A stretch of 64,000 nucleotides of DNA, from contig LSRY02000062.1 of assembly GCA_001643675.2 (NCBI GenBank), forward strand, positions 62,001-126,000, given 5' to 3'. Each line of letters begins with the position of its first letter. Within the stretch, counting starts at the first letter, position 1. Below the pieces are notes generated by a model. It had not been told where the DNA came from. It saw nothing but the letters and a program-made list of their open reading frames with translations, and searched no databases. Of this stretch, positions 41,225 to 62,996 are shown in pieces. The position numbers and the translations under genes are program-made. Origin of the DNA: Monocercomonoides exilis PA203 (lineage: Eukaryota; Protista; Preaxostyla).

Positions 41225-44200
41225 TCATCTCTCGCTCATCAAGCTCCAACTCCCATTCCCACTCCCATTGTTTGTTCCATTTGTGTCTTCCTCAACATCC
41301 ACAGCATCCGACACAGTCATGACTAAACCTCCTGCCGGAAACCGCTGGATAAACTCTCGCTTCAGCCCAGCCAGCGTGGGCCGTTGTTCCGGAACTGCTG
41401 AAAGGCACTGGCCAACCACTGTGCTCAGACTTCCCGTGCTCTTCACATCCTTCCTCGGTCTCTCCCCATTCACAATCTTCTGCCCCGCCACCTCTGCCTC
41501 ATACTCCCCAAACGGGATCTCCAGCGTCAAGCACTCCCACAGCATCATCCCAATCGAGAATGCCACCGACTCCTTCGTTGTTCCCATGTTTTTGTTGATC
41601 AACAATTCTGGCGCCTTCCACCTCAAGCACTCCTTCCTGTTGTCTTCACAATCCTCAAACGCTGATGAGGGAAGGGAGTCATCATCATCATCACTTGCAG
41701 ATGTCACAACTGTTGTTGATGAGATCGATGATGAAGTGTCTGAGTCTGATGAGCAGTCGGAGTGGAGGGCAATGCAGATCACCATGTGTTCTGAGAAAAG
41801 AACAATGTGAGGACTCAGATTGGCCAGTGAAGATAATCCGTTTTCCATCTCATCAAAGGAGTGAAGTGCAAGATTGGCCACCCAGAACAGGATTTGGGCA
41901 GCTGTCTGCTCTCTTTGTTGAAGACTTCCAATCGCCATCTCTTTCTTCTCATTCCTCCCATGAAGCAGCATGAACAGCGAATCCCTCAGATCCACAATCA
42001 GCTTCTCATGAGGAGACGAACAGGCCATTGCATCCACCAGATTAGACATAGATGAAGTGGTTGGGCACAGATCCTCCCCTCGAACAAATGTGGAATCTGA
42101 ATCAGTTGTTGAAGTGGTTGAGGTGGATGAGATGGAAGGTGATGGTGTTCTCTTCCTTATCTCTTCTTCGTCAACCTTTTCCAATGCCCAATCAGGAATC
42201 TTGTCTGAGTCCTTTCCCAAGATGTATTCTGTGGAGCCACTCTCGCTCAAAAGATACTCTTCAGACTCCGAATGCACCATCTCCTTTCCATTCATTCTCT
42301 TCTTGATCCTCTCTTCATTCTTCTTCTCTACCTCCTTCTCTCCTCTCCTCCACTGCTCCTCAGGCGACATCTCCATCGTCACCATCTCAATCAGCTTCGG
42401 ATCCTTCTTCACTGTGTCTTCCACAATCACTTCCAATTCCTCTGCTCTTCTCTTTTGCTTTCTCCATCGAATAATAGATATGATCAATGCTATTAGAAGA
42501 ATTGCCACAATTACAACACACACAATCAACACCCATGTAAATTTTCCTTCTTTCCCACCTTCAACAATTCTATCTTCTCCATCAACCTTGGGCTCACTTT
42601 TATTTTTGACGATGAACGACTCTGTCGATGAAGGAGACTCTGCATTTCCAAAGAGGATGCACACTTTCACTTCTGTCTGCGCTGATGCTCCCGAAACAAC
42701 AGACAACGGAATCTTCCCCACAGCTTCATCCTCGCTCACATGCCCCGCCTCCTCAAATTCGAAACACTCAATTTGCTCAACATCTTCAACAACAACCACA
42801 ACCCTGAACGACAGGTTGCACGGAATAAGGAGTGACCCCACAAATCTCACTCTCGCCTCTGACACATTTTCTGCTTCTGATGATTCTTCCACTCTCACCT
42901 CTCTCAGCGTGGGGATGAAGAACGAAGAGCCTCTGTCTTCTGTGATCCCCTTCACATTGCACCCTTCGTTCAGCATCCACATCGAGCTCCTCGCCCCCAT
43001 CCCGTCTCCGCCCTTCACACTCACCACGTCCACTTCTCCCATCCCGCTGCACAAAATGTTCCTCCGATACGACGGATACTTCTCCATCCCTGCCAATGGC
43101 CTGTTCCCCTCAAACACCCCCTTCTCCACAACAACACTCCCCCCAACCACTCCCATCCCTCCCTCTGCCCCATCCCTCACTGTCGTGTCTCTCACCACCC
43201 CCTTGCTCCCCACCAGCTCCACCAGCGATCCATTCCATCTGCACATCTCATCCCCCTGTGCATTTCCCAAACTCTCTTTGTCCTTTCCCCCTTTCCCCTC
43301 AAACAACGATCCCTCCACCACCAGCTCCCCACTCCCCTCAACACTCATGATCTGCCCCTTCCTTCCAGGTGTTGTGTTGTTGCCAAACGAACAGTTTGCA
43401 ACCACCATCTCCACATCCTCCAATCTCGCCTCAACAGCACATGCCCCCTCTGTGCTTCGCCTGATGTTCCTCACCGAAGAGTGTGCCACTTTCACAGATC
43501 CTCCTTCCTTCACTCCCCTTCCCCTTCCCTCATCATCTTCACCATCATCGCCATCTCCAACACTCACAACAGAGCAGCCTCCACACACAACATCCCAACA
43601 CTCCATTTCTTTCACTGTGACCTTTGCCCCTGTGCCGATCCACATCACCGACTCTCCCACATCCAGCTCCCTCGCCTCAAACCCAACAACTCCCACAACA
43701 CTGCTCTCCTCAAACCGCATCAGTGCCTTTCTCCCACATATCCCCTCCACCCGCGACTCCCTCATCTCAAACCTCCCCGACACCACCTTCACCAGCGTGT
43801 GCTCCACCTCAATCCCCTCTCCCTCTGATGAAAACACTCCCCGCGAAATCGTGCAGCTCCCATTCAGTTGTAGCACAACACACTCATGTGCCGACCGGAA
43901 TCCTCCCCGAAACACCATCCCCATGTTTTCCAGCCACACCCCTTCTGAGCATTCCACAACCCCCTCTGCCAACGGCTCCTGCTCCACCTCCTCCCGAAAC
44001 ACCACCTTCGCTCCTTCTGACCCATGCAGACTCTTCACTGTCACCGAGCATATCTGGCAGTCCTTCCTCAGCCCTGCTTCTCTGTCAATCAGCACCTGGC
44101 TGTACGATGATGCCAGCACATGCGACAGCCCATAGTCCAGCGATCGGCATGGCAGTGTCGAGTTCCCACACGGCTTCGAGTCACTCCCTTCCCCATCTGC

Positions 44201-47200
44201 CCCGCACACGAAGATCAGCTCGCTCCGATACACAACAATCAGCGGAATCAGATCCTCCTCTTTTTCCCCCTCTCCTCCCCAGATCGCATTCTCCCTGTCA
44301 TATCGCGGCTCTCGCAGATCCAGCACAAACTGCCTCTCGCTGATCTGAGACTCAATTTCCCAGCACCGCACATACACATCTCTCCCCACAAGCGCCTTGT
44401 TCTTCCCAAACTCCACATTCCCCAGCACAAACCCCAGCGCTTCCCTCTCTTCCACCGTGCTCCTCAGATACACCCCTCCTCCTTTCCCCTCCACTGCCTC
44501 GCACCCCTCCACCACTGTGTCGTTCATCTCAAACCTCCCATCCACCGCAACTGCCACACACACCCCTCCCCCACAGCTCTTGCTCCCTCCCGAGCACAGC
44601 TCAATCGTCGAGTTCCCAATCCCCACAAACACCCCCTCCGACACTGACGATGACACCACACTCGCCTCATCCTTCCTGTTCCTCACGTTCCTCACTCGGC
44701 ATCCCTCCAGCTCCATCCTCCTCCCATTCCCCTCCTTCCCACTCTCCTCAAACACAAACAACGCACTTTCAGTCACAACATCACACACCTCGCACTTCAC
44801 AATCCCCACATCTCCATCTTCCCCAGCCACCAAGTGGAATCCCACCACACAATCCTTCTTCCCGCTGAACACACACTCCCTCACCTCCACCCACGCCCCT
44901 TCACCACACACACCTATCAGCGCCCTCTGCCCATTCGCAAGCCTTCCAGGAAGTGAGAAATTCACTCTCAAAAACGATGCTCCCTCTGCCGCAAACACCA
45001 TCCCCTTCTCCTTCTCCACCACTTCCTCCACTTCCATCACACTCATCTTATCCTCCCGCTCCGACTCCACCCCAACCATCTTCAGAGTCGTTTCCCTCTC
45101 TGTCCAGCACATCTCTCCAACCACAATCCTCCTCATCCCCTCTCCCCTCACTCGCTCCACCCCATACTCAAACGTCGAGCACCGAAATATCTCCTTCCCA
45201 CACCCAATGTTGTTCACCCCCTCCTTCCCATCCACATATACCACCTCCCCATAATACCCAGTGATGAACACAAACAGATCTTCCCCATCTCCAAAGTGCA
45301 CCCCATCCACCCCAACAAGCGAATTCTTCCGCTCATCTTCTCCAATCTCCTTCGCAAACCCAAACGATGTCTCATTCACCACCTCTGTCAGATCCGCACA
45401 CTTCACAAACATGTCTCGCCCAACCCAGGCATCATTCCCTTCAAACTCCATCTCTTCAAACAACACTCCACTCCCTTCCCCTTGCAACTCAACACACACA
45501 AACCCTCCTTTACCTCTCTCCACTGCTTCGCACGCACATCCCTTCGCTTTTGTCTCCACTCCCACCACTTCAAGCATCCCTCCCTCCCCCAGCACCATCC
45601 CAATCGCGCCTCCCTCTGAGCTCAACTCCGACCTCACCCCTTCAAACAGACATCCATCAGCAACAACCACAACATTCAATCCCACCCTCGAAGACACAAT
45701 GCATGCCTCATTTGTGTCTTCAAGCACAACCCCCCTGAATTGGGTGCCATTCATCTTCACAACAGTCCCAGCCGAATTTCCTCTCCCATTCTCATCACCT
45801 CCCTCTTCTGCTTCCAATCCAAACAGAGCATGCCCTTTCAGCTCCGCATTCACAAACTCGTCTTCCAAAAGCCTTATTTCACTGCTCCCACAAAACTCAA
45901 ATGGCTGCCTCTCAAATCGCATGTCAGTGATCATGCACTCTTCCATCTCCATCATTCCTCCCCCAACCACAACCAGGGCATATGTCAGTCCACCTCCACC
46001 AACACACCCAAAGCTGCAATCTGCCAGCGTCAACATCCCACCCTCTGATCCAGAGGATTCAATCGCACACTTCACAGGAACAGAAAGCGATGGTGGCATC
46101 CGAAACTCCATCCTCGAAAACCCTGCCTCTCCATTGTTCCACACAATGCTCTTGATTCCTTCTCCAATTGTCATTTCCCTGCTCAGTGTGATCTCCGATC
46201 TTCCTTCCTCCTTCACTCCCTCAACTGTGAATCCTGACAGATCATACCAATCGCATATCCTTGCCTTGTCTCGGATCTTCAGCCCTTTCCTCTCTCCCCC
46301 TCTCTTCACATTCTCATATCCTCTCCAGAACGATTCGCACGGATACACTCCATCCCCACACCCAACAACATCCACCCCATCCTCCGATATCTCAATCACC
46401 TCCGAATACCGCTGCTCAAGGAAATACCCCAGATCCACAGGATTTTCGGAAAACAACCCACTGTCAGTCCCTGCCAGATCAACACCCAGACCCTCAGCAT
46501 TCTCAATCTCAAATACCCGCTCACTCGAAACAGACACATTCAGGTCTCCGCACAGAACAAACACATCTCTTCCCCATCTCGCCTGGTTTCCTCCGACTGT
46601 CACATTCCCCACACTGAAGTTGTTCGTGCTGCTTTCATCCACCCCAATAAACACCCCTCCTCCCCTCCCGCCTGTCTCCTCCACCAAGCATCCCTTCACC
46701 TCTGAACTCTTGATCTGAAATGACCCTCTTCCTGCAATCTCAGCAAGCACTCCACCTCCTCTCCCCTCTGCACTCCCGCAACTGCATCCCTCCACTGTGC
46801 AGTTCTCAAACACAACACTCCTCCCTTCACCCACCCTGCTCCCAACAACTGTCCCATGCCCCACTGCTCGGGTCACAGATGAGTATGTTGTGTTCACTGA
46901 TTCAAATGTGCTCCCTGCCTCCACAAACGAGGCATCCCCCATCCCAAACCCGCTGACATCACACATCTGAAGTGTGATCCCTCCTCCAATGGCACACAGA
47001 CGCGTCTTCGAGAATGGCTCCAGCCCCTGACTGTCTTTTCCAGCAAGGATGCACCCGCTCAGCTCAAGCGAGCTCTCCCCATCACTCACAAGAAACAGGC
47101 ATCCTACCCGGTTGCGCTCCCTCAGCCCATCATCCACAATCTTCATATCCATCAGCTTCGCCTCACCCCCACTGATCACAACAAGCGCACTTTCTGCCTC

Positions 47201-49012
47201 TCCAAGCTCTGCTCGTATCACTGTCGCCTCTTTCCCTTCTCCTCTCCCTGTGACATTTCCTCCTCTGACTTCAACCTCCCCTGACACAAACTCCCCTTCC
47301 TTGATCCTCATTTCCATCGACTCCTCTGCTGCTCGTTTCACCCCTTGCTTCACGGTCAGGCAGTTGAACGAGTCTTGCTCGCTCTTCCCACACCCATCCC
47401 AATCAAACCCATTCACTGCCACAACAATCACAGAAAGTGTGCTCAGAGGGTCTTTCAGATATTCCTTTGTTTCATCTGGATTCGCCCATTCAAACACTGT
47501 TCGTGGCTGTTCGCTCAAAGAATAACACTCACTCATCGTCAATGTTAGCTTTCCATTCCAGCTACCATTCACATGAATATCGTTTCCTTGTGTTCCTGCA
47601 CTGTTATTAATAAACAAACAATGTTGAATCATTGCAATAACCATGTTCTCCTGTGAATGATCAAAACAAATTGCGCCTCCGAATGTATTCGCCCTGTTTG
47701 ATCGAAATTGGCATGACAAAAGTGAAAAATCATTTGTCATACGATAAATATTTAAAGCTCCTGAGAAATGTGTTATTGCTTGATTATTGAAAAAATCACA
47801 TTCAGACATTACACATTTGTCATGATTATATAACTCTCCAGCTCCAAGGCCGTGCGAGTCGCATTCAATAAATTTGCACTTATTCATTATCAGGCTATTT
47901 GTCCCTCTCGAATCGAATGCTCCTGACGCATCGCAAGAGCTGCATAAATGGAATGTCGTGTTTTCTGATGTCCAAGCGCCAGTTCCTTTATTTCGCACTG
48001 CAGCTGCTCTTGAAGAAGATCCCGTTAATCGACAACTCTCGAACAAGCAGTTCTTCAATGTTAGCGTTGCGTTTCCTGAAAGAAATATTGCTCCCCCTGA
48101 AATTTCGCTCGAGCTTTGATATGAGAATGTTGTATCCTCAAACAGCTTTTCTTCTGTATCGAATGTGTGCCTCTCTGATTCCGCAGAGCACTCCATGAAT
48201 GAGGAGTTGAAACAGAACAGCGGACAGGAAGCACCGTCAACAACACATCCCATGAAAGGATTCTGCACCTGTCTGCAGTTTATCGAATCCATTATGCAGT
48301 TCTTGTCTGGTGCACCAGCTGTTCCACTCTCCACTAGTCTGAAAGGTTCGTGCATCTGAGTCATGTTGATGAATTCGCATTGGCGCACAGCAACTGAAGT
48401 GGAAGGCGACGAAGGCAAAAACGAACCGTGACATTGCACCAAGTCCCTGAAATCGCTTGAAGAAACACTCACTCTGCCTGGTTTTGACAGAATGTGTTTC
48501 GACTCTGACAGGCTCACAAGGTTCGCCATCCTTCCACTTCCCAAAGGCAATTGGAGCGAAATGTTGAAAAGCACACTCTCTCCGCTTTCCATCCTAAACG
48601 GACTCTCTGCCCCCTCCTGTGCAATCTCCACCCTGCAGCTCCACAACTTCAGGGCCGAGCTGCTCTGGATGTCAATCAAGCTCTTTCCACGTGTTTGTTG
48701 AAGAACAGCCTTTTGAATCGTCATCGATGTGTTGGATATCACAGCCCAAGTGGAAATCCAGCTCTCTTCGTTGGCCCTTTGCTTTTCACTGAACTCGCTT
48801 TTTGCTCTGCTTCTGCGGCCTTCCAAGCTGTTTCTTGAGACTGCAATTCCTGATGTTTCTTCTCTGCCATTTCTTTTTTCACTGCCAATGTCTGTCTCAG
48901 CAAAGCTCTTCCAGGGTTGGCTTGTTGCACCTGATCCCAAACAAACGAACACCAGCAGCAAAACTCTCATGAGATGCTGAACGTTGCAACGGGAAATGGC
49001 AGAACTCATCAC
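41225..49012 (-). CDS. 2595-aa single-exon receptor-like protein: signal peptide, repeated beta-helix (pectin-lyase/PMP-like) ectodomain, TM, degenerate tyrosine-kinase-like tail
   Basis: Uninterrupted 7.8-kb ORF; GGAI/GGGV..FxxN motifs and G.D..GCG....C repeats; TM FTWVLIVCVVIVAILLIALIISII-RWRKQKRR; LRWKAPE..ESVAFSIGMMLWECLTLEIPF..ERP..CL...PEQRPTL. Confidence 0.92.
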   Translation of the reverse strand: MMSSAISRCNVQHLMRVLLLVFVCLGSGATSQPWKSFAETDIGSEKRNGREETSGIAVSRNSLEGRRSRAKSEFSEKQRANEESWISTWAVISNTSMTIQKAVLQQTRGKSLIDIQSSSALKLWSCRVEIAQEGAESPFRMESGESVLFNISLQLPLGSGRMANLVSLSESKHILSKPGRVSVSSSDFRDLVQCHGSFLPSSPSTSVAVRQCEFINMTQMHEPFRLVESGTAGAPDKNCIMDSINCRQVQNPFMGCVVDGASCPLFCFNSSFMECSAESERHTFDTEEKLFEDTTFSYQSSSEISGGAIFLSGNATLTLKNCLFESCRLTGSSSRAAAVRNKGTGAWTSENTTFHLCSSCDASGAFDSRGTNSLIMNKCKFIECDSHGLGAGELYNHDKCVMSECDFFNNQAITHFSGALNIYRMTNDFSLLSCQFRSNRANTFGGAICFDHSQENMVIAMIQHCLFINNSAGTQGNDIHVNGSWNGKLTLTMSECYSLSEQPRTVFEWANPDETKEYLKDPLSTLSVIVVAVNGFDWDGCGKSEQDSFNCLTVKQGVKRAAEESMEMRIKEGEFVSGEVEVRGGNVTGRGEGKEATVIRAELGEAESALVVISGGEAKLMDMKIVDDGLRERNRVGCLFLVSDGESSLELSGCILAGKDSQGLEPFSKTRLCAIGGGITLQMCDVSGFGMGDASFVEAGSTFESVNTTYSSVTRAVGHGTVVGSRVGEGRSVVFENCTVEGCSCGSAEGRGGGVLAEIAGRGSFQIKSSEVKGCLVEETGGRGGGVFIGVDESSTNNFSVGNVTVGGNQARWGRDVFVLCGDLNVSVSSERVFEIENAEGLGVDLAGTDSGLFSENPVDLGYFLEQRYSEVIEISEDGVDVVGCGDGVYPCESFWRGYENVKRGGERKGLKIRDKARICDWYDLSGFTVEGVKEEGRSEITLSREMTIGEGIKSIVWNNGEAGFSRMEFRMPPSLSVPVKCAIESSGSEGGMLTLADCSFGCVGGGGLTYALVVVGGGMMEMEECMITDMRFERQPFEFCGSSEIRLLEDEFVNAELKGHALFGLEAEEGGDENGRGNSAGTVVKMNGTQFRGVVLEDTNEACIVSSRVGLNVVVVADGCLFEGVRSELSSEGGAIGMVLGEGGMLEVVGVETKAKGCACEAVERGKGGFVCVELQGEGSGVLFEEMEFEGNDAWVGRDMFVKCADLTEVVNETSFGFAKEIGEDERKNSLVGVDGVHFGDGEDLFVFITGYYGEVVYVDGKEGVNNIGCGKEIFRCSTFEYGVERVRGEGMRRIVVGEMCWTERETTLKMVGVESEREDKMSVMEVEEVVEKEKGMVFAAEGASFLRVNFSLPGRLANGQRALIGVCGEGAWVEVRECVFSGKKDCVVGFHLVAGEDGDVGIVKCEVCDVVTESALFVFEESGKEGNGRRMELEGCRVRNVRNRKDEASVVSSSVSEGVFVGIGNSTIELCSGGSKSCGGGVCVAVAVDGRFEMNDTVVEGCEAVEGKGGGVYLRSTVEEREALGFVLGNVEFGKNKALVGRDVYVRCWEIESQISERQFVLDLREPRYDRENAIWGGEGEKEEDLIPLIVVYRSELIFVCGADGEGSDSKPCGNSTLPCRSLDYGLSHVLASSYSQVLIDREAGLRKDCQICSVTVKSLHGSEGAKVVFREEVEQEPLAEGVVECSEGVWLENMGMVFRGGFRSAHECVVLQLNGSCTISRGVFSSEGEGIEVEHTLVKVVSGRFEMRESRVEGICGRKALMRFEESSVVGVVGFEARELDVGESVMWIGTGAKVTVKEMECWDVVCGGCSVVSVGDGDDGEDDEGRGRGVKEGGSVKVAHSSVRNIRRSTEGACAVEARLEDVEMVVANCSFGNNTTPGRKGQIMSVEGSGELVVEGSLFEGKGGKDKESLGNAQGDEMCRWNGSLVELVGSKGVVRDTTVRDGAEGGMGVVGGSVVVEKGVFEGNRPLAGMEKYPSYRRNILCSGMGEVDVVSVKGGDGMGARSSMWMLNEGCNVKGITEDRGSSFFIPTLREVRVEESSEAENVSEARVRFVGSLLIPCNLSFRVVVVVEDVEQIECFEFEEAGHVSEDEAVGKIPLSVVSGASAQTEVKVCILFGNAESPSSTESFIVKNKSEPKVDGEDRIVEGGKEGKFTWVLIVCVVIVAILLIALIISIIRWRKQKRRAEELEVIVEDTVKKDPKLIEMVTMEMSPEEQWRRGEKEVEKKNEERIKKRMNGKEMVHSESEEYLLSESGSTEYILGKDSDKIPDWALEKVDEEEIRKRTPSPSISSTSTTSTTDSDSTFVRGEDLCPTTSSMSNLVDAMACSSPHEKLIVDLRDSLFMLLHGRNEKKEMAIGSLQQREQTAAQILFWVANLALHSFDEMENGLSSLANLSPHIVLFSEHMVICIALHSDCSSDSDTSSSISSTTVVTSASDDDDDSLPSSAFEDCEDNRKECLRWKAPELLINKNMGTTKESVAFSIGMMLWECLTLEIPFGEYEAEVAGQKIVNGERPRKDVKSTGSLSTVVGQCLSAVPEQRPTLAGLKREFIQRFPAGGLVMTVSDAVDVEEDTNGTNNGSGNGSWSLMSER

Positions 49013-51998: not shown

Positions 51999-52418
51999 TT
52001 ACCAAATATTCACACATAAATCTCCAGCACCTGGATTATTATTATCTCCCAAATAAAGAGAATAATCGGCTAATGGACACGGGGTTGAAGCCTGCTTGTA
52101 TTTTATTGTGAACTCCACTGGTCCAACAGGAATTGGGGTTGAAACATTTGCTACATCAGAATACTTCAGCATGTCCACCTTCATTGCTCCAGAACCGCAT
52201 AAAACAGAATCTTTGAGTTGTTTAAATGCAAATGTTCCGTCTTGAATAGTCGCAGTTGCATTCAAGGTTATTTTAAGTGTTGTATATTTGTTGTTAAAAT
52301 TCGGAGGATATGGATTTGATGTAACTTTTACCAGACGAAGCTTGTTCATTCCACTTCCACATTCGTTATAATGTATACCAGAAATAGAAGTTAACAGCAA
52401 AAACAAAAAACTTAACAT
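51999..52418 (-). CDS. ML-domain (MD-2/NPC2-like lipid-recognition) secreted protein
   Basis: 139 aa with signal peptide; ECG...V.VTSNPYPP..., L.I..NAT..I.DG, D+......PIP.G and terminal LCV pattern typical of ML/E1_DerP2 proteins. Confidence 0.72.
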   Translation of the reverse strand: MLSFLFLLLTSISGIHYNECGSGMNKLRLVKVTSNPYPPNFNNKYTTLKITLNATATIQDGTFAFKQLKDSVLCGSGAMKVDMLKYSDVANVSTPIPVGPVEFTIKYKQASTPCPLADYSLYLGDNNNPGAGDLCVNIW

Positions 52419-53257: not shown

Positions 53258-54400
53258 TTATGTGGACATTGAATCGTTGTCTTCATCAGTTTCACTTGAT
53301 TCATCATCGTCTCCTTTGTCATCAGTTGGAAGAGAGTTCATTATTTCTTTAACTAATTTTTTGAAAGTGTAATTCTTTGATGAATGAAACATGAAATTTG
53401 CAATGAAATCATCAATGAATTTGTCTTTTGCACCAGTTCTAGGAAAAAACGCTCGAAACCTGGACAACAAACCCTCGATTCAATTTGTGCAATCACCTGT
53501 AATTGTATCAACAAAATGATATTTGTGACACACAGTCATGTGAGTGAAGTTGTGATCCTTTATGAAGTTGAAAGCGCTCCGTTCATCGCTGTTAACTGTT
53601 GTCTTTGGTTTGATGTCAGCTAAAATGACAGGCAATAAGGTTCTTCTGCTTCTGTTCTTCACGCGAATAATAATGAATCTTCTTCCTCCATCTTCATGTT
53701 TTCTTTCTATTCCTTTAAAAAGCCAGACTTGTGCCTTTTTCCTTCCTTTATGAGATTTTCTTTTTCTCAAAATATCTTGTCGATTTCCACTATATGACCC
53801 TCTTCCCCAACATGTTCGAAATTTTCCATTATGATTGTTGAAGAAATTGATACAAAATTAAAAAACCAAAATCCAACTGTCTTTTTGTTGACATAAAGCA
53901 AAATGATAAATGGAGTGATGCTCAATTTTAGAGCAAAATACAGAAAAATATGAAGAAATTTGTTTACTGAAATATTTGAATATCTGAACGAAATTCCTTC
54001 CGAAATGCTTATTGCCTTTCCACATTTAGAACATCAATTTTGTTTCATTGTCTCCGATCTGGTATATATAAACATTTTCCCCTCACATTTTGTTCAACAT
54101 TTGGCTGATCCTTTTTGAAATCAATATTTCGTTCGAGTTTTGATCAAAAAAATATTTCTTTAAGGGATTTTTAAATAAATGGACGATATCGGAAAATACC
54201 AACATTTTATGTAGATATTTAAAATGAAATATTATTTTTTCAAAATCCCATTGAGATAAAATTTTTGATCAAAACTTAAACGAAAGTATGATTTCAGAAG
54301 GGATCAGCCACATTTATAATTTTCTGTTTTCATTATTTCGGTGAGTGGGTAGATAACGATAGGTATAAAATTTCGATTTACAAGTTTTTTTTTATTAATA
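53258..54400 (-). pseudogene. Merlin/ISXO2-like (DDE_Tnp_IS1595) transposase pseudogene
   Basis: G.EGHIVEID/RKRK.HKGR...VWLF.GIER, VKNRSRRTLLPVI...I.P.T.V.SD, H.TV.H..HFVD..TG..TN*IEG; N-terminal CxxC pairs; stops and frameshifts. Confidence 0.88.
54103..54309. mobile_element. 207-bp fold-back MITE inserted in the Merlin ORF
   Basis: ~78-bp imperfect IR arms beginning GGCTGATCC; 6-bp direct repeat ACATTT at 54097-54102 and 54310-54315. Confidence 0.82.
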
Positions 54401-57400
54401 CAATTGTAAATGAATGCGATTGTGTTTTTCGAAAGTGATTTTCGAATTACGATGATACCAAACTGAGAAAATCTATATTTAAATATAAACAGGAATTTAT
54501 ATTTTGAAAACTTCCTCACTTTAAATTGAAAATCCTAATTAGTTTATTTAATAAAAAGTTTTCGTTGCACTTAACCCTTATGAAAACATTGAAAAGGAAT
54601 AAATATTTATACACTAATTAAAAACATTATAGAAAATATCTCTCTTATTTATCTTATAGGTTTGTTCATTAACTTTTGATAATAAATGCATGATAAATAC
54701 AAATAATTTTCAGTTTTTTATCGAATGTTTCTCCTTTTTGAGAATATTTGTATCCGTTAATTAGGTTTTTGAAGGTCAAATATTCTTCTTTTTAACATTT
54801 TTTATACAAGTCGCTATGGACCCTTTCATTGTTTTTTCTTGTTTATTTTAAATTTTAAGAAAATATCGATGTCATATACATCAAAAGCATTAATATTATA
54901 TTCAAAAAATTGAAGTTGTTCAGGCAAAACTCATGTTTTCGAAATGATTCATAAAACTCTGTGATTCTTCGTTAATAAATCAGGATTATTTGTTCTGAAA
55001 TTATTTTTCACAAATCTCGTAGAAATTCAATATTGAAGTATCTCCGAGAAATAAAAAAAAGATATTTTTTCCTGTGTAAATGTTTTTTATTTTTTAACAA
55101 TAAGTCACAGAATTGTTTGAATTTCTTAATTCAAAGGCAAATTTCGAAAACGTATAAGGAGAATTATTAAATGAATCATTAGATGAATTGCACAATTTTT
55201 GTGTTATTTTGAAATATTTGTAAAATTTTGAAATTAGCATATGTTATTTTGAAATAATCAAGTGATTTTGAAATTTTTCAGAAAAATTGAAAATAAGGTA
55301 GATATTTTAAGTTTCACCAACAAATTTCAAGTTTTATGAAAATTGAAGGAAGATCTTCTTTTTTCTTTTGACATTGTTGCATTCACAAATCGCAGTTTAT
55401 TTATCACAATGATTATTAAATATGTTTTATTCAATTGTCAGAACATTTAACAACAAATAATGCGAAATATATCATTTTTCATATTTTTGTGAAGATCGTT
55501 AAGAAAAAAATATATTATTTTGCGTTTAATACGATTATTGAAATGTTTCCATGAACAATAAATGATTGTAATTATTCAAAACATTTCAAAATTTCTATAA
55601 AATGGTTATAAATTACTGATTTGCAAAAATCTACAGAATACGTCAAATATGAAAGAAAAAAGCAAAAAAGAAATCAAAAATGTATCAAGTATTGATGCAA
55701 TGCGCAAAAATGAATATTTCCAAAAGAACAAAAATGTTAACGTGACAAAAAAAATGTTAAAAAGTGAAAGAGAAATAAAAGTGTAGTATTGATAATATAT
55801 CAGCATCACGTTTCGCTTAATGAGATTTTCAATATCATCAAAAAATATATTCAAGTGTTATTGTTTCTTTCTCTTCCTCTTTCTCTTCTTCTTCTTCTTC
55901 TTCAGCACATTCCACTTTTCTCAACCGCTCAAACATTCACAAAAAAACAGCATTTGCATCGACATAGGCGTTTTTTCAATGATGAGAAAACTCAAAGAAC
56001 ATCAACTTGAGAACAAAATTTTCTCAGTATCTTTTCAATGAGGCAGTTGTCAGTTCAACTTTTGTCAACTCTGCCTCAAGAAAGGAAGTCACCACAGGCC
56101 AGTTCCTCTTTTCTCTCTTCTTTCAAGCCGTCAAAAATTTCATTTCCACTTCTCAATCATTTGCCAAATTTCTTCTTCTGCTGCATCATCAATTCCTTGA
56201 TCTCATTTTCGGCTTTCAACAAGATTCGTCGTATATGTCTTCCAAAACCTTCTAAAAAGAAAGAAAAATATCTTCTCATTTCATTTATATTTCTTAAAAA
56301 TATCTACTTCTTCCCAATTTTTTTTGCCAGATATCTTCTTCGGCCTTGTCATCAACTTTTGTTTCCTTCTTTTTGCTTTTAACAAGATTCGCCTGATACG
56401 CCTTCTAAAGCCTTAAAAATAATCATCTTCGTTTCCTTTCCTTTCATTTATATTTCCCGCTCCCTCACTCCTCCATGCGCCCCTTCAATTGTTGTTTTCT
56501 GGCTTCTTCAATGCATTTAACATCCTCTCTTTCCATATTCCATAGGCATATATTCGCAGCAAATATTCTTAAAAAATTCCTAGTTTCATCAAAAAATAAT
56601 AACAAACGATGAAATTAAAAATAATCATAATAAGCAAACCTATATCTTTTATGATGATCATTCTTCTCAAACATCTTCTCCTCCTCCAAATATCGTTCCT
56701 TTCTGCAACAAAACCCATCTGTCTCGTCTTCGTTTCCTTTCTGCTTCCTCAAAAAATATCAGCCAAAGCCCAACTTCTTGTTCTTCTTCCGCTCAAATAA
56801 CTCATCCATCTCCATTCTATAAAAAAACCAGCAATGAAGAAGATTCCATCAGAAGAGCCCCTTTCCATCCCTACTCGCTGCATCACCTTCTTCTTCTCCA
56901 CATTTCCCCCAAAAAACATCAACGCCCCTCCACCACACATCCTTCATCTCCTCCACAAACAATTGCAAAATTCCTTTCTTTTTCACTCCCTGTTACTTCT
57001 TCTCCCATCATCCTTCTCCTAATCAGAAAATAAATATCTCCAATATTTTGCCTCTCTTTGGTGCAAAACACCCTCTCGTAGTCAGCCCCTCATCTCGATT
57101 CATCCCTGTCGCACCTCTGTCTCCACACCTCCAATGCAAAGCGCCAACACTGATGTTCCTTCTTCCTGTCTTCCTCCACCTACACCTCCATCCCTTGCCC
57201 CGCAAATGAGAGGCGCGACCAAAAAGTCCATCCAATTAAAAATATAAAATATGCAAAACCTTCCTCACATTTTTTCCCCTTCAACTCCACTTTTCTCTCT
57301 TATCATGCACACGCTCGCAAAAATTCTCCCTCTTGTCATACCTCATATGCCTCCTCCTTCTCTCGATGCATTTGATAAAAAAAATAATCCCTTTTCCATA

Positions 57401-57744
57401 TCACTCCATTTCCAACCTAACTCTTGACCTCCCCTCCAATAAATATATTCCATTAGCTCCACTCATCTTCTACCCCTATTTCCCACCTCGCCCCACCTCC
57501 TCAACAATAAATTCCTTTTCTCCAACAAATAACACAACTCCCACTCCTTCCAATTCACAAAAATCTCAACAACAACCCTACAAAAATTCATCCAAATCCA
57601 TCTCCTACACATCCATTTTGCATCTTAAATCTCATAAAAATACCTCTTTATACCCCAAAAAACATTCTTTTTATCGTTTCATTCCCAATCAAAACCCTGT
57701 TTATTCGTAATTACTAAAATTCTTCACCCTACACAATAAATCTA

Positions 57745-58178
57745 GGCATAGGTGAAAATTGTACCACTTTCAGTTTGCATTTTTTCAAAATTCAAACACA
57801 ACAGTGTAAATCTACACGATTACGTCAAGCGATTCAAAGAGGGAAATTTCGAAATTCGATCAAAAAATTTTCAACAAAATTTTCAATTTTGGAGACCCAT
57901 AATATTTTTATGTTGATCACTACAAACTTAAAATTCGATTTCTTAACTCCTAAAAGTTCAAATGAATTTATCGATTCAATGAAACAAGAAAAAAATATAG
58001 TTTTTATTGTTTGTCATGGTGAATTTTCGTCTATATTATTTTTTATGTTGTTAATTTCTATAAATTCAATAAATACGAAAAGCTAATGTTCTTAAATAAT
58101 AATGTGAATGCTCCAATAACATTTTAGAAGCAATAACGGAGGAAAACATATGCAACGTATGATAATAATCTTTAATTG
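57745..58178 (+). repeat. Left TIR (434 bp)
   Basis: Reverse complement of 61362..61795; mirror ORFs 57775..58086+ and 61454..61765- translate identically. Confidence 0.95.
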
Positions 58179-59180
58179 TTTAATAACTATTTTTGGTAAT
58201 AAATTTGTTAAAACTTGTATGATATTCAATTTTAGAAAGGAGGAAGGAAAAGTTGAATTGGAGAGGATGTGTTTAAAAGAATGTTCTTTGAAAGAGTTCA
58301 TGGGGAAGCTGGATGAATGAAAAGAAAAGATGTGGAGAATATTGAGTGATGCGAAGCTAGTTATAACGAGAAAAGGGAAAAAAGGAGGAGGATGATGAGG
58401 AGGAGGAGGAAGGTTAATGCTAAGAAGCATATGAAAAATGCAATATTGAGGATGCAGCGGGATGTCTTCGAAAGTTTTTAAAAAAATCAAGATTTTTTGT
58501 GGATAACCTTCAAACACTGTATTCTCTATTTTTTTTCATAAACCATATTGCTGTTTTCATTTTCATTCCATTTTATTTTCGTTTTTTGAGATTTGGGGTT
58601 TATAATTGTTTGCGCAAAATTAATTTTTCCTGTTTTTAACAAAGGATTCACAACAAGCTCGATTATAACTATGTATACATATTTTATTTTGGCTTTGCAA
58701 AGCTGCTTTCGTTTTCAAACGCATTTGTTAAAGAAATGAGTGTGAATTTGTAAAAATTTGTACAAGAAAAACAATTAATTCAGTTATTCATCATTATTAA
58801 AGTTTTATTAATTAAAGATAAAATAATAGCAATGAATAAATATCGCATCCAAATAATTGGAAAAAAATCACAAAGCTGGTTCAAAAAATTGCTTCTGCCC
58901 AGATCACGAATTATGTATCACTGTCGACGTGTGTGATTCGATATTTGTACTGCAGCGCTTGAATCGACTTTTTTTTCTTCAATAGAAATTATTAGAAACT
59001 GTGGCGGAGTGGGTACGAATGTCAATTCCAATATTAGATTCACCTTTAGACTTAGGATTATCCCTTATTTTTGCAAACAAAAATATTTCAACATCAGTTG
59101 GTGTCACGATCACTCTCGGCGATAGATTTCTTTCGAATTGTGATCATTCCCTACATGCCACACCTCCAACTGCCCTCTTT

Positions 59181-61044
59181 TCACACTGAACAGCTGTCCA
59201 GTTGATGATGGAAAAAAAGTATTCCTGTTCCAATCGAACTTACATCCCTTCTCTTCCCAATAACCGAAATTTTCTTTGTCCAAATCTTAATAGTTGTTGT
59301 CTCGCTAGTGTGATCCCCTTCTATCAGTGTAACTGACAGGCTCACTTGAATCACGCTCTTATCAACTGCAACACCAATGGTTCGGCATGCACTTGACTCA
59401 TCCAATCCACATAACTCTTCTTCGCCACCGCCACTTACTGTTACAAATCGATTGAGAATCCCTCTCTTCAGCCAATCCTTCTTTTCCGCGTGCTGAAAAT
59501 ACCAGGTGTTTGCATTCGAGTAGTTGTATGCAAAGCACATTCTCTGTTCATTCGTGTTTGTTGTGTAGCATTCATAGAACGGATTTCCTGAGTGCAAATA
59601 GACATTATAAAAATCAACATAATAGGCATCGTGACCATATGGAGTATTTACAGAACATTTACATTCATGGAAAAAGATGAAATAACAATAAATCGTTTCA
59701 TTTGGTGCTGCTGCTCGATTTGGATATAATTCCAAACCTCCTCCATATCCCATTGCCGAACATGAAATAAACTGAATGCTCCTCATTTTGAATTGATTAG
59801 GAACAGTGACACAATACATACCTCCACCCCAATTACTTTTAATTGAACATGAAGTGAAACTGCAGTCAAACACACGCGCACTTTCCCCTTCCCCTTTTTC
59901 TTCTCCAATGCAATCAGCTCCCGAAACCTGAAAATTATCAAGATAAAGTCCTCCTCCACAATTAACTGTTTTGCAATTCTGAAATTCACATCCGCTGATA
60001 TGAACACAAGACGAAATCGTATAAACAAATACTCCGCCACCATAACGATTTTGAGCGTTACAAGAATCGACGGTGTTATTCACAATCTCAACTGATGAAA
60101 TATTGAAGCAATTAATTCCTCCTCCAGCATAATGTACAATACATCCATTAAACACACAACGAGAAACAGATACAGAGGCAGATGATTGACTGTACATGCA
60201 CATAGCTCCTCCACTCGATATTCCATCAGTATACGAGTCGCTTTCTCATGTTGTCTTCGATCCATCCCATTCACACCAAACAAATGTATTCGCTCCATTT
60301 TCCGTTGTGTTTTGTCTCCCTGGCTTCAATGGTACCTCTGCATTTCCTTCACATTTCACATTCCTTGTCCTGCAACACCCAATAAACGAGGTGTTTGAGG
60401 CAGTCAAAGAGGCATAGGGATTATTGAGGGAATGAACAATCCCTCCATCACATACATCGCAGACTGATGAGAATGAGCAGCTGTTCATAAAACTTGATGT
60501 TTGGGTAGACGAAGTTGCTGGGTATGGGCAATCTGTAGATGCTGTTGAAATGTTGAAAAATATTTGTTTGAAGAGGGATACAAGAGGCATGGAAGGAGAT
60601 GAGAAAAATCGGTAAATAGAGGAGAAAGGCGATTCTCTCACAGAAGTTCTTCCTTTTCCTTTTCCCTTTCCCCATGCTTCTTAGCTCCATGTCAAAAAAT
60701 ATCCCAATGCAGCTGTATCCATTTTCCTGCCTCTTCTTCTGCTGCTTCCAAAAAGATTTTTGTAAATGAATTCCACAAAAATTTCTTTTCCCGTTCGCTC
60801 CATTTTTTCCGTTTCGCTCATTCTGCCAAACACTCTTCTGGATGCTGATTTCTTTCAATTTCTTCCAAGTATGCCCCAGAAAAAAGCAGTGTTTCCACAT
60901 TCCATATTTCATGCTCCCCCGGCGCTTCTGACAACACCTGATCGCATCACACATCAATGAAATCAAAAATAGACAAATAAAAACAAAAAATGAAACATGA
61001 AGAAAATGAACAAACAAGAATAAAATACCTCCACAAATCTTCAT
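59181..61044 (-). pseudogene. Captured 5' portion of a beta-helix surface-receptor gene (frameshifted, lacks TM and kinase tail)
   Basis: Hydrophobic N-terminus, FMNSCSFSSVCDVCDGGIV, GGG(I/V/L/M)..F..C beta-helix repeats and DWLK..RFVTVSGG..EELCG.DE..ACRTIG; same architecture as the N-terminal quarter of 41225..49012. Confidence 0.8.
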
Positions 61045-61361
61045 TTCTCTTCACTCCCCTCGTCCCCTGTTTGCCTCTCTCCAATTAACTCTCACCCCAA
61101 CATCATTCACTTCAAGCACCACATACACCACGCCTTCACCTTTCAAATCGAATCCAAATAAAGAAATTAAAAATTGTTTTCACCCGCTCTTTTATTGCCC
61201 ATTCAATTTCACTTACAGCATTTTTCTCTTCTCGTGTTCCTCAATCCAGCCTTCGATACATAAAAAATGCAGTTGAAACCTGATCTTCATTTTGTCAAAA
61301 ACGTTTCAAATTCAGTTCAATTTAAAATAGAGAAAATACAGCATTTGAGAAAGTTAATAAT

Positions 61362-61795
61362 CAATTAAAGATTATTATCATACGTTGCATATGTTTTCCT
61401 CCGTTATTGCTTCTAAAATGTTATTGGAGCATTCACATTATTATTTAAGAACATTAGCTTTTCGTATTTATTGAATTTATAGAAATTAACAACATAAAAA
61501 ATAATATAGACGAAAATTCACCATGACAAACAATAAAAACTATATTTTTTTCTTGTTTCATTGAATCGATAAATTCATTTGAACTTTTAGGAGTTAAGAA
61601 ATCGAATTTTAAGTTTGTAGTGATCAACATAAAAATATTATGGGTCTCCAAAATTGAAAATTTTGTTGAAAATTTTTTGATCGAATTTCGAAATTTCCCT
61701 CTTTGAATCGCTTGACGTAATCGTGTAGATTTACACTGTTGTGTTTGAATTTTGAAAAAATGCAAACTGAAAGTGGTACAATTTTCACCTATGCC
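61362..61795 (-). repeat. Right TIR (434 bp)
   Basis: As above. Confidence 0.95.
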
Positions 61796-62996
61796 TAAAT
61801 CTATCCTTTTACAACCACATTGTCTTCATATGCACATTCAACCACAATACAGAGCTGAGCCTTCTTTTCTATTATTGCAGAAAATATGTGATGGGCATGA
61901 TCAAGAAATGTCAAATACTCAGAAACTGTCAACGGAGTGAGACTCTGAGATTTTAACAAAGGCAGATTGACTAAATGAAATATTTCTCGTGAAGAGACGG
62001 GACATTGCAAAAGCGATATTTATTTGAAGAAAATAAAAGTTGTTCATTTTAATTTGTGGATGGCTGTGGAGCAACAATATTTCCAATGTGAATTTGAAAT
62101 TTAATGCGTATGTATTTTTTTATTGTTCAATTGATTGTGAAGATGTTTCCATCCGTATCCTCCCCAAAGTCGTGATTCAGGCAAATTATTTAAAATGAAC
62201 AATTTATTTTTTGCAGAGCAGAACAGTGAGGAAGCAAGCCAAATGTTTTCAAACAAATATATTAGAGCTTGAACATATTTTGTTGCAAATGTTTATGCAA
62301 CTTTTTTTGGATTCAACACGCGGCATTTCGCAATTCGATGAAAAATGAATTTTGAAGGAGCAGAACATCTGAGTAAACAGATAATTGGAAGGACTTGAAA
62401 AAAATTATTTTATTTCAATAATGATTATGATGCACAGTCCGAAGAATTGTGTGGAATAAATGTTTTGCAAGAAATAAATAAGAAGAGAAGAAAAAAGAAA
62501 AAGAAAGAGGAAATAATGCTGCACCTGAAACTTGAAGACAAATGAAAGGAAATAGCTGTTTTATTGTTGCAAAAACTTAGAGAAATTGTGGAAAAGATGA
62601 TGTTCTGTTGAAATACATCACTGAAATTTTTTTTTGGAAATTTCATTTTCAAATTTCTTTTTTGGGATAAATCCTTCAAAAAAATATTTGAAATAGAAAT
62701 GAGTATCGTTTATTGTAATTTTTACCCAATTGTTTATCTAAAAACTGCAGTGTTTATAGGTTTTGTTTGAATAATCAAAATTAATCACTAAAAAATATCT
62801 TTTGAATATCTTTTCAACTAATTTCAATTTTAAAAACAGCAGAGCATTTTTCGATAAAATGCTTTGAAAAACTTCTTGAACATGCATAATATATATTTTC
62901 ATAGAAAATATTTGGCCACCTGATTAATTGCAAAATTCCCCAAAAATTTCAAAATTTCCATTGACAATTTCAAAATTATTGGGTTATTTCAAAATT

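Follow-up and report, generated by a model that had tools for sequence, protein, structure and literature searches.

The element considered here is a 4051-bp transposable unit at positions 57745-61795 of a 64,000-nucleotide stretch of the Monocercomonoides exilis PA203 genome (C61:62001-126000, referred to below as the window; C numbers denote contigs of the M. exilis genome searched, which comprises 82,301,135 bases in 101 contigs). In our reading, to which we assign a probability of roughly 75%, it is a mainly passive, probably Merlin-type non-autonomous element, whose inherited cargo, the head of a receptor, is overwritten by ectopic gene conversion. The evidence throughout is assembled sequence, and the later genome-wide searches were judged from match coordinates. 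From left to right, the element and its flanks, including the terminal inverted repeats (TIRs) and the target-site duplication (TSD), are made up as follows:

56900..57736, unstranded: left half of the interrupted repeat, outside the element; 94 candidate copies, many of them in C80/C53/C42 arrays.
57737..57744, plus strand: left TSD TAAATCTA, present once at paralogous empty sites.
57745..58178, plus strand: left TIR, 434 bp, with no mismatch to its right-hand counterpart; its outer ~320 bp correspond to the TIR core of the family, whereas its inner ~110 bp are a copy of right-hand subterminal sequence.
58179..58505, unstranded: interior spacer, matched (84-98%) in the C34 sister copy only, with no protein match.
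58506..59096, minus strand: element-specific region downstream of the cargo, the first ~130 bp of which are a decayed continuation of receptor coding sequence.
59106..60671, minus strand: cargo, a pseudogene for the right-handed beta-helix head of the receptor/kinase-like family (~residues 212-725 of MONOS_10961).
60292..60419, minus strand: putative exchange patch, 128 bp, identical to the C25 element, a non-sister.
60696..61267, minus strand: conserved non-coding block on the upstream side of the cargo, which at least 25 TIR-less copies match at 84-88% identity.
61362..61795, minus strand: right TIR, 434 bp, from the arm comparison.
61796..61803, plus strand: right TSD TAAATCTA, as on the left.
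61804..62500, unstranded: right half of the interrupted repeat, outside the element; 218 candidate copies.

The case for rewriting comes from a comparison of shells with cargos. Overall, sister copies have TIRs that are 95-98% alike and cargos that are ~65-79% alike. In particular, identity between the window and C34 copies falls from 94.7% in the TIR core through 89.4% downstream of the cargo to 64.7% within the cargo, the corresponding values for the C68 and C35 copies being 97.7%, 94.0% and 69.3%. The TIR and subterminal trees place the window and C34 copies as sisters (support 98-100), and the C68 and C35 copies are likewise joined by their shells. Approximately unbiased (AU) tests reject a window-C34 clade for each of three segments of the cargo (p of 1e-7, 3e-6 and 2e-5), and they reject a clade of the C68, C35 and C58 copies in every third of the cargo (p from 1e-4 to 0.012). 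What is more, near-exact tracts are shared across the family. Namely, the 128-bp tract at 60292..60419 recurs exactly in the C25 element, other copies matching it at 80-108 of 128 positions and the next best genome match reaching 88%, and it reads as a patch that the two elements exchanged recently. Another patch, in the C21 element, recurs at 98% identity in the C35 element, at 97% in a TIR-less cassette pair on C80 and at 98% in a lone locus at C62:257994-258145, and it also has 48 amino acids identical to the full-length receptor MONOS_7424. Long tracts are also shared mutually by the full-length receptor genes (at least 30 amino acids in 244 of 9,870 pairs). The mosaicism of the cargo is observed, and gene conversion is the process that we infer from it.

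The capture of the cargo, on the other hand, would have been one old event, inherited by all copies, because the same segment is present in every copy examined. In all full-size copies examined, the homologous segment occupies one and the same position and faces the same way with respect to the ends, while in a 2.4-kb subfamily the same cargo family is found in the two copies matched; the junctions are likewise shared, the upstream block and the decayed margin flanking the segment in each case. One can imagine instead that initially empty elements each took up a different receptor paralog, in the manner of Pack-MULEs, and this would account for the paralog-like divergence of the cargos (synonymous divergence, dS, of ~1) and for the two types that occur at the cargo 3' end. 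However, repeated independent capture is largely refuted by the shared junctions, and each cargo is an internal patchwork, with a nearest neighbour that differs in each third, so that we consider it very unlikely. A preliminary description of the window had taken the same cargo in all copies, together with the lack of a full-length parent gene, as evidence against its own proposal: the first half is what we find, but full-length relatives do exist. The label Pack-type, which it gave to the element, is apt for a non-autonomous TIR element with a gene fragment, but not in the sense of Pack-MULE-like repeated capture, there being one inherited segment.

That the element inserted as one unit is directly evident. 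The unit has the ends GGCATAGG...CCTATGCC, and its 434-bp arms are identical, with the first mismatch at position 435 and an extension to ~444 at 99.5%. The 8-bp TSD TAAATCTA flanks it on both sides, and the flanks are the two halves of a dispersed repeat that it interrupts; at paralogous empty sites (C2:1147625, C47:1212883, C49:93793, C80:1605518 and C42:455845) these halves meet at a single 8-mer. There is no transposase within the 4051 bp. These results bear out the preliminary description as to the extent of the unit, its identical TIRs and perfect TSD, its transposition as a unit and its lack of a transposase. The interrupted repeat itself (56900-57744 and 61796-62500) recurs as part of palindromic arrays on C80, C53 and C42.

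As for what was captured, the minus-strand coding segment at 60671-59106 matches approximately residues 212-725 of receptors of 2,500-3,700 amino acids (best identity 68%), and the full-length relatives have an N-terminal hydrophobic segment, one transmembrane (TM) segment and a partial kinase-like domain. Over residues 1-250, a structure model of the cargo (predicted local distance difference test, pLDDT, 75) can be aligned to parallel beta-helix proteins with Z scores of 12-15; a Foldseek search gave no significant match. The fold model and the receptor matches agree with the earlier identification of a beta-helix ectodomain fragment from a receptor superfamily, and parent-type genes, which were to be looked for, do exist. 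That said, the coding homology begins only at ~60671, i.e. at ~residue 212-240 of the full-length relatives, and receptor residues 1 to ~210-240 are absent from the window element, including the signal peptide that had been assigned to the cargo. A hydrophobic frame at ~61044 was considered as a signal peptide and rejected, being T-rich sequence whose frame is not preserved between copies. Moreover, while the cargo does lack a TM segment, as had been proposed, it is not the entire ectodomain, but ~500 residues of the outer head, and in the window copy it is broken by a TGA at 60248-60246 and by a frameshift near 59215, the latter falling in a homopolymer and so perhaps an artefact of sequencing. 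The cargo had been linked to the gene at 41225-49012, which belongs to the same superfamily but is distant in this region (21% over 401 amino acids to the cargo type), and is not the source of the cargo.

Could the cargo be an expressed, secreted decoy ectodomain, and could transposition of such pieces have expanded the receptor family? The homology to TM/kinase-like receptors and the purifying-selection signature in the cargo would fit this idea, but we find it hardly credible, since in addition to the missing signal peptide and the two lesions of the window copy there is no conserved start frame, and no full-length gene was seen between these TIRs. The numbers point the same way: the genome contains more than 1,400 TM-kinase candidate sites, with 332 kinases having been reported for the organism (PMC6759080), and ~25 plus ~20 element fragments, mostly broken. 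Because these ~45 fragments cannot account for the >1,400 sites, a role of the element in expanding the receptor family, as envisaged in the preliminary description, is not supported. The shuffling of ectodomains that was envisaged along with it is real by way of sequence exchange into the cargo, but not by way of transposition fusing the cargo to new genes.

The ~570-bp block upstream of the cargo is non-coding, with frame-breaking indels between copies, and no matches to the receptor N-terminus were found in it. Its interpretation as a decayed receptor N-terminus was rejected, as neither a hidden Markov model (HMM) nor a frameshift-aware alignment was significant (best z 3.3 of nine), although the frameshift-aware alignment is insensitive, having also missed the decayed 3' margin, which was detected only by a gap-free DNA test. 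At least 25 TIR-less copies of the block lie in tail-to-tail pairs on C80, C53 and C71; the pairs are 6.6-12 kb across, and most are too short to hold full-length genes. In the one cassette pair that was read, coding ends after ~630 codons, with no TM segment and with arms 99.9% identical. Because the block matches these TIR-less pairs, which are mostly too short for full-length genes, the captured unit appears to be a truncated head cassette and not the front of a receptor gene. The receptor upstream region, or promoter, that had been counted as part of the cargo is accordingly not one: the block matches the cassette arrays, not full-length genes. A MULE-like gene suspected by eye upstream of the C80 cassette has no Pfam support and is a relative of the repeat interrupted by the element.

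Which way did the sequence flow? The cargos differ by a median dS of ~1, with a ratio of non-synonymous to synonymous divergence (dN/dS) of ~0.29, and contain 0-3 stops each, as against the ~8-12 expected from neutral decay over 15-25%. Given this dN/dS and so few stops, the variants would have arisen under coding constraint and entered the elements later. Past the cargo end, the coding sequence that would follow is present in the elements in a broken form with a higher AT content. In the C35 copy, a gap-free comparison of this margin with intact coding sequence gives 64 identities over 132 nucleotides (shuffle maximum 52), and in the C1 copy this stretch is intact coding sequence, which would fit the copying of a longer tract into that element. 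These observations speak for the elements as the receiving side, in addition to transfers between elements, and no case of element-to-gene transfer was demonstrated in the tracts compared. The converse would be that the elements are maintained mobile donor cassettes feeding expressed receptors, arrays and elements forming one diversification system. The upstream block, with a median identity of 88% among copies against 77% for the TIRs, resembles a homology box in this uniformity and would speak for such a system, as would the three-way sharing of the C21-element patch and the two stop-free cargos, on C7 and C25. However, most cargos are broken, with numbers of stops as expected if they had decayed neutrally from the time they were last overwritten, and the margins decay. 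Full-length genes share tracts too, so that no special role of the elements is needed, and we regard the donor system as unlikely. It is likewise doubtful that the transposon scatters a variable receptor head together with a homology block and passes patches to expressed receptor genes, the cassette arrays perhaps having been seeded from its cargo.

Copying has also affected the ends of the element. The inner 110 bp of the window TIR are upstream-side subterminal sequence copied to the opposite end; in the C29 copy, the copying went in the reverse direction and the upstream block was removed. The window and C34 copies share the same TIR extension. Each arm of this nearest sibling departs from the window copy at 33-36 positions, and yet the two window arms are identical to each other; the arms have thus been homogenised, end to end, after the copies diverged, and TIR identity therefore does not date the insertion. 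In other words, identical TIRs are no clock in this genome, and the recent transposition that had been read from them does not follow; the intact TSD suggests moderate youth only.

Turning to the family as a whole, a genome search with the TIR and the end pattern showed that the TIR is not confined to the window. There are ~25 related elements of 1.2-11.5 kb with GGCATAGG ends, as well as ~20 copies of the 2.4-kb subfamily, which has related ends and near-uniform length (e.g. C8:588473-590875, C25:2355686-2358070 and ~18 more). The region at 58506..59096 has 20 genome matches, all counted as element-specific, with 18 of the 20 within known elements. Among the 18 copies read at both ends, the TSD is a perfect 8 bp in 10 and has at most one mismatch in 13, and a perfect TSD of 7, 9 or 10 bp occurs in none. 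Merlin elements are defined by a TSD of 8 or 9 bp and TIRs of 24-462 bp starting with 5'-GG; the family has both the TSD length and the 5'-GG ends, its TIRs measuring 210-541 bp, with three copies slightly above the published range. The published M. exilis Merlin families F1-F7 all have an 8-bp TSD, and four of the seven (F1, F2, F4 and F6) start with GGCAT, while none of them has the same TIR or the GGCATAGGTG end (PMC8101967). The GGCATAGG ends share GGCAT with these four, F4 being the closest by eye. A profile search of the genome gave 575 candidate PF12762 (DDE_Tnp_IS1595, Merlin) domains, and a first-look search for the MULE transposase PF10551, in which controls were detected, gave no candidates, although divergent MULEs could escape it. 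A 5.9-kb element that encodes a transposase and has GGCA ends, described below, also counts towards Merlin. Of the two superfamilies considered at the outset, Merlin fits better; from its ends and TSD, the family is most likely of Merlin type, with a mobilising transposase that would be encoded elsewhere.

Several candidates for this transposase were rejected. The 2.4-kb subfamily is set aside for now as the autonomous partner, since none of the scored Merlin matches falls within it and the same cargo family is present in two of its copies. A 5.9-kb element at C25 ~910845-916767 (L027:2950-8872), with 190-bp TIRs (95%), GGCAAG ends and an 8-bp TSD with two mismatches, encodes a broken Merlin transposase and a further host-like open reading frame (ORF), but it has its own, different TIRs. 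A DDE_1 (pogo-like) ORF in the C7 copy (L013:4032-4763) sits within a 2.3-kb extra insertion. Two further observations concern Merlin sequences and GGCATAGG elements. Namely, the 5.9-kb element cuts short a GGCATAGG element, of which only one half is left, and the 11.5-kb GGCATAGG element ends at C74:81348, exactly at the start of a Merlin transposase match, and was probably inserted into a Merlin gene.

In the reading that we prefer, a family ancestor would have taken up a truncated receptor-head unit of the kind found in the C80, C53 and C71 arrays, consisting of the non-coding upstream block and the beta-helix coding segment, and all copies would have inherited it. The elements would move by cut and paste, in trans, the movement being observed and the enzyme presumed. 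Conversion would replace one patch of the cargo core after another, the partners being other elements, the arrays and probably also full-length receptor genes. It may take place when breaks within or close to the element are repaired, with the upstream block and the constant stretches of the head as its seeds. Margins that escape overwriting would decay, while copying of the same kind, end to end, remakes and lengthens the TIRs. The element would then for the most part receive sequence passively, acting as a donor now and then, within an exchange network that spans the family, and would not drive family expansion.

Some points weigh against this reading. No transposase with these exact ends occurs in the 18 copies read (five longer elements lie outside this set), and no Merlin domain lies within a GGCATAGG pair among the 150 of 575 PF12762 matches that were scored, so that the suggested search for a copy with a Merlin or MULE transposase came back empty in both. 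The cassette structure was read in one TIR-less palindromic pair only, and the only near-exact patch partner of the window copy is another element, not a cassette or a gene. Likewise, the C62 locus is probably MONOS_7424, which we infer only from the identical residues in the C21-element patch. Finally, the mosaicism was read from assembled sequence, and the direction of transfer rests, indirectly, on the decayed margin and dN/dS.

Elsewhere in the window, positions 1-38866 form a giant palindrome in the assembly, with arms ~99-100% complementary, a 3.5-kb spacer and a duplicated Sec15 exocyst gene. On the minus strand, 53261-54033 is a broken Merlin transposase (PF12762, E 1e-10), close to the published F7, for which no TIR/TSD pair was found, and 51999-52418 is a 139-residue ORF resembling, on visual inspection, an ML/NPC2 lipid-binding domain, with no Pfam match at E 0.01.

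Carrying of gene fragments has been described for MULE, CACTA, hAT and Tc/mariner elements, and gene conversion from silent cassettes for trypanosome VSG, Anaplasma msp2 and Borrelia vls. The present system resembles the latter in that truncated surface-gene copies exchange patches and a conserved upstream block could serve as homology; it differs in that the present data show neither a single expression site nor a switching machinery, and in that some of the truncated copies lie in a DNA transposon, where most are broken. With plant Pack-MULE and Pack-TYPE elements (PMC8903248, PMC6379663) the family shares non-autonomy, long TIRs, a TSD and a host-gene fragment in place of a transposase. However, those elements carry many unrelated fragments, whereas here one rewritten homologous segment is found family-wide, the ends are GGCA and no MULE domain was detected in the genome; both have long TIRs, but the TSD of MULEs is mostly 9 bp (8-11) and that of the window family strictly 8 bp. 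What defines a Pack-TYPE element, namely a host-gene fragment between TIRs, no transposase and parent-type genes elsewhere, is found here, but the diverse cargos expected of Pack-TYPE and Pack-TIR elements are not, the segment being the same in all copies examined. Animal multicopy Pack-TIRs such as Ssk-FB4 likewise go back to a single capture, after which they transposed repeatedly to remote sites, but their copies stay close to one parent, whereas here strongly diverged cargos lie inside near-identical shells; the text of that survey mentions neither Merlin nor gene conversion (PMC8277862). The Merlin families F1-F7 have in common with our family the genome, the TSD length, the GG termini and, in four cases, the GGCAT start, but they are ~1.5 kb long and transposase-coding, with TIRs of 23-29 bp, and no cargo-carrying family is described among them (PMC8101967). 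Our literature search, whose coverage is incomplete, found no report of cargo-carrying Merlin elements, of oxymonad cases or of conversion-renewed cargo.

What is unusual, then, is that the cargo would be renewed from coding-constrained relatives and not simply decay. The genome paper noted an overlap between 'unclassified repeats' and kinase genes (PMC8767320), and elements with rewritten cargo offer an explanation for part of it. Such renewal would tie a transposon family to the diversification of the largest gene family of the organism.

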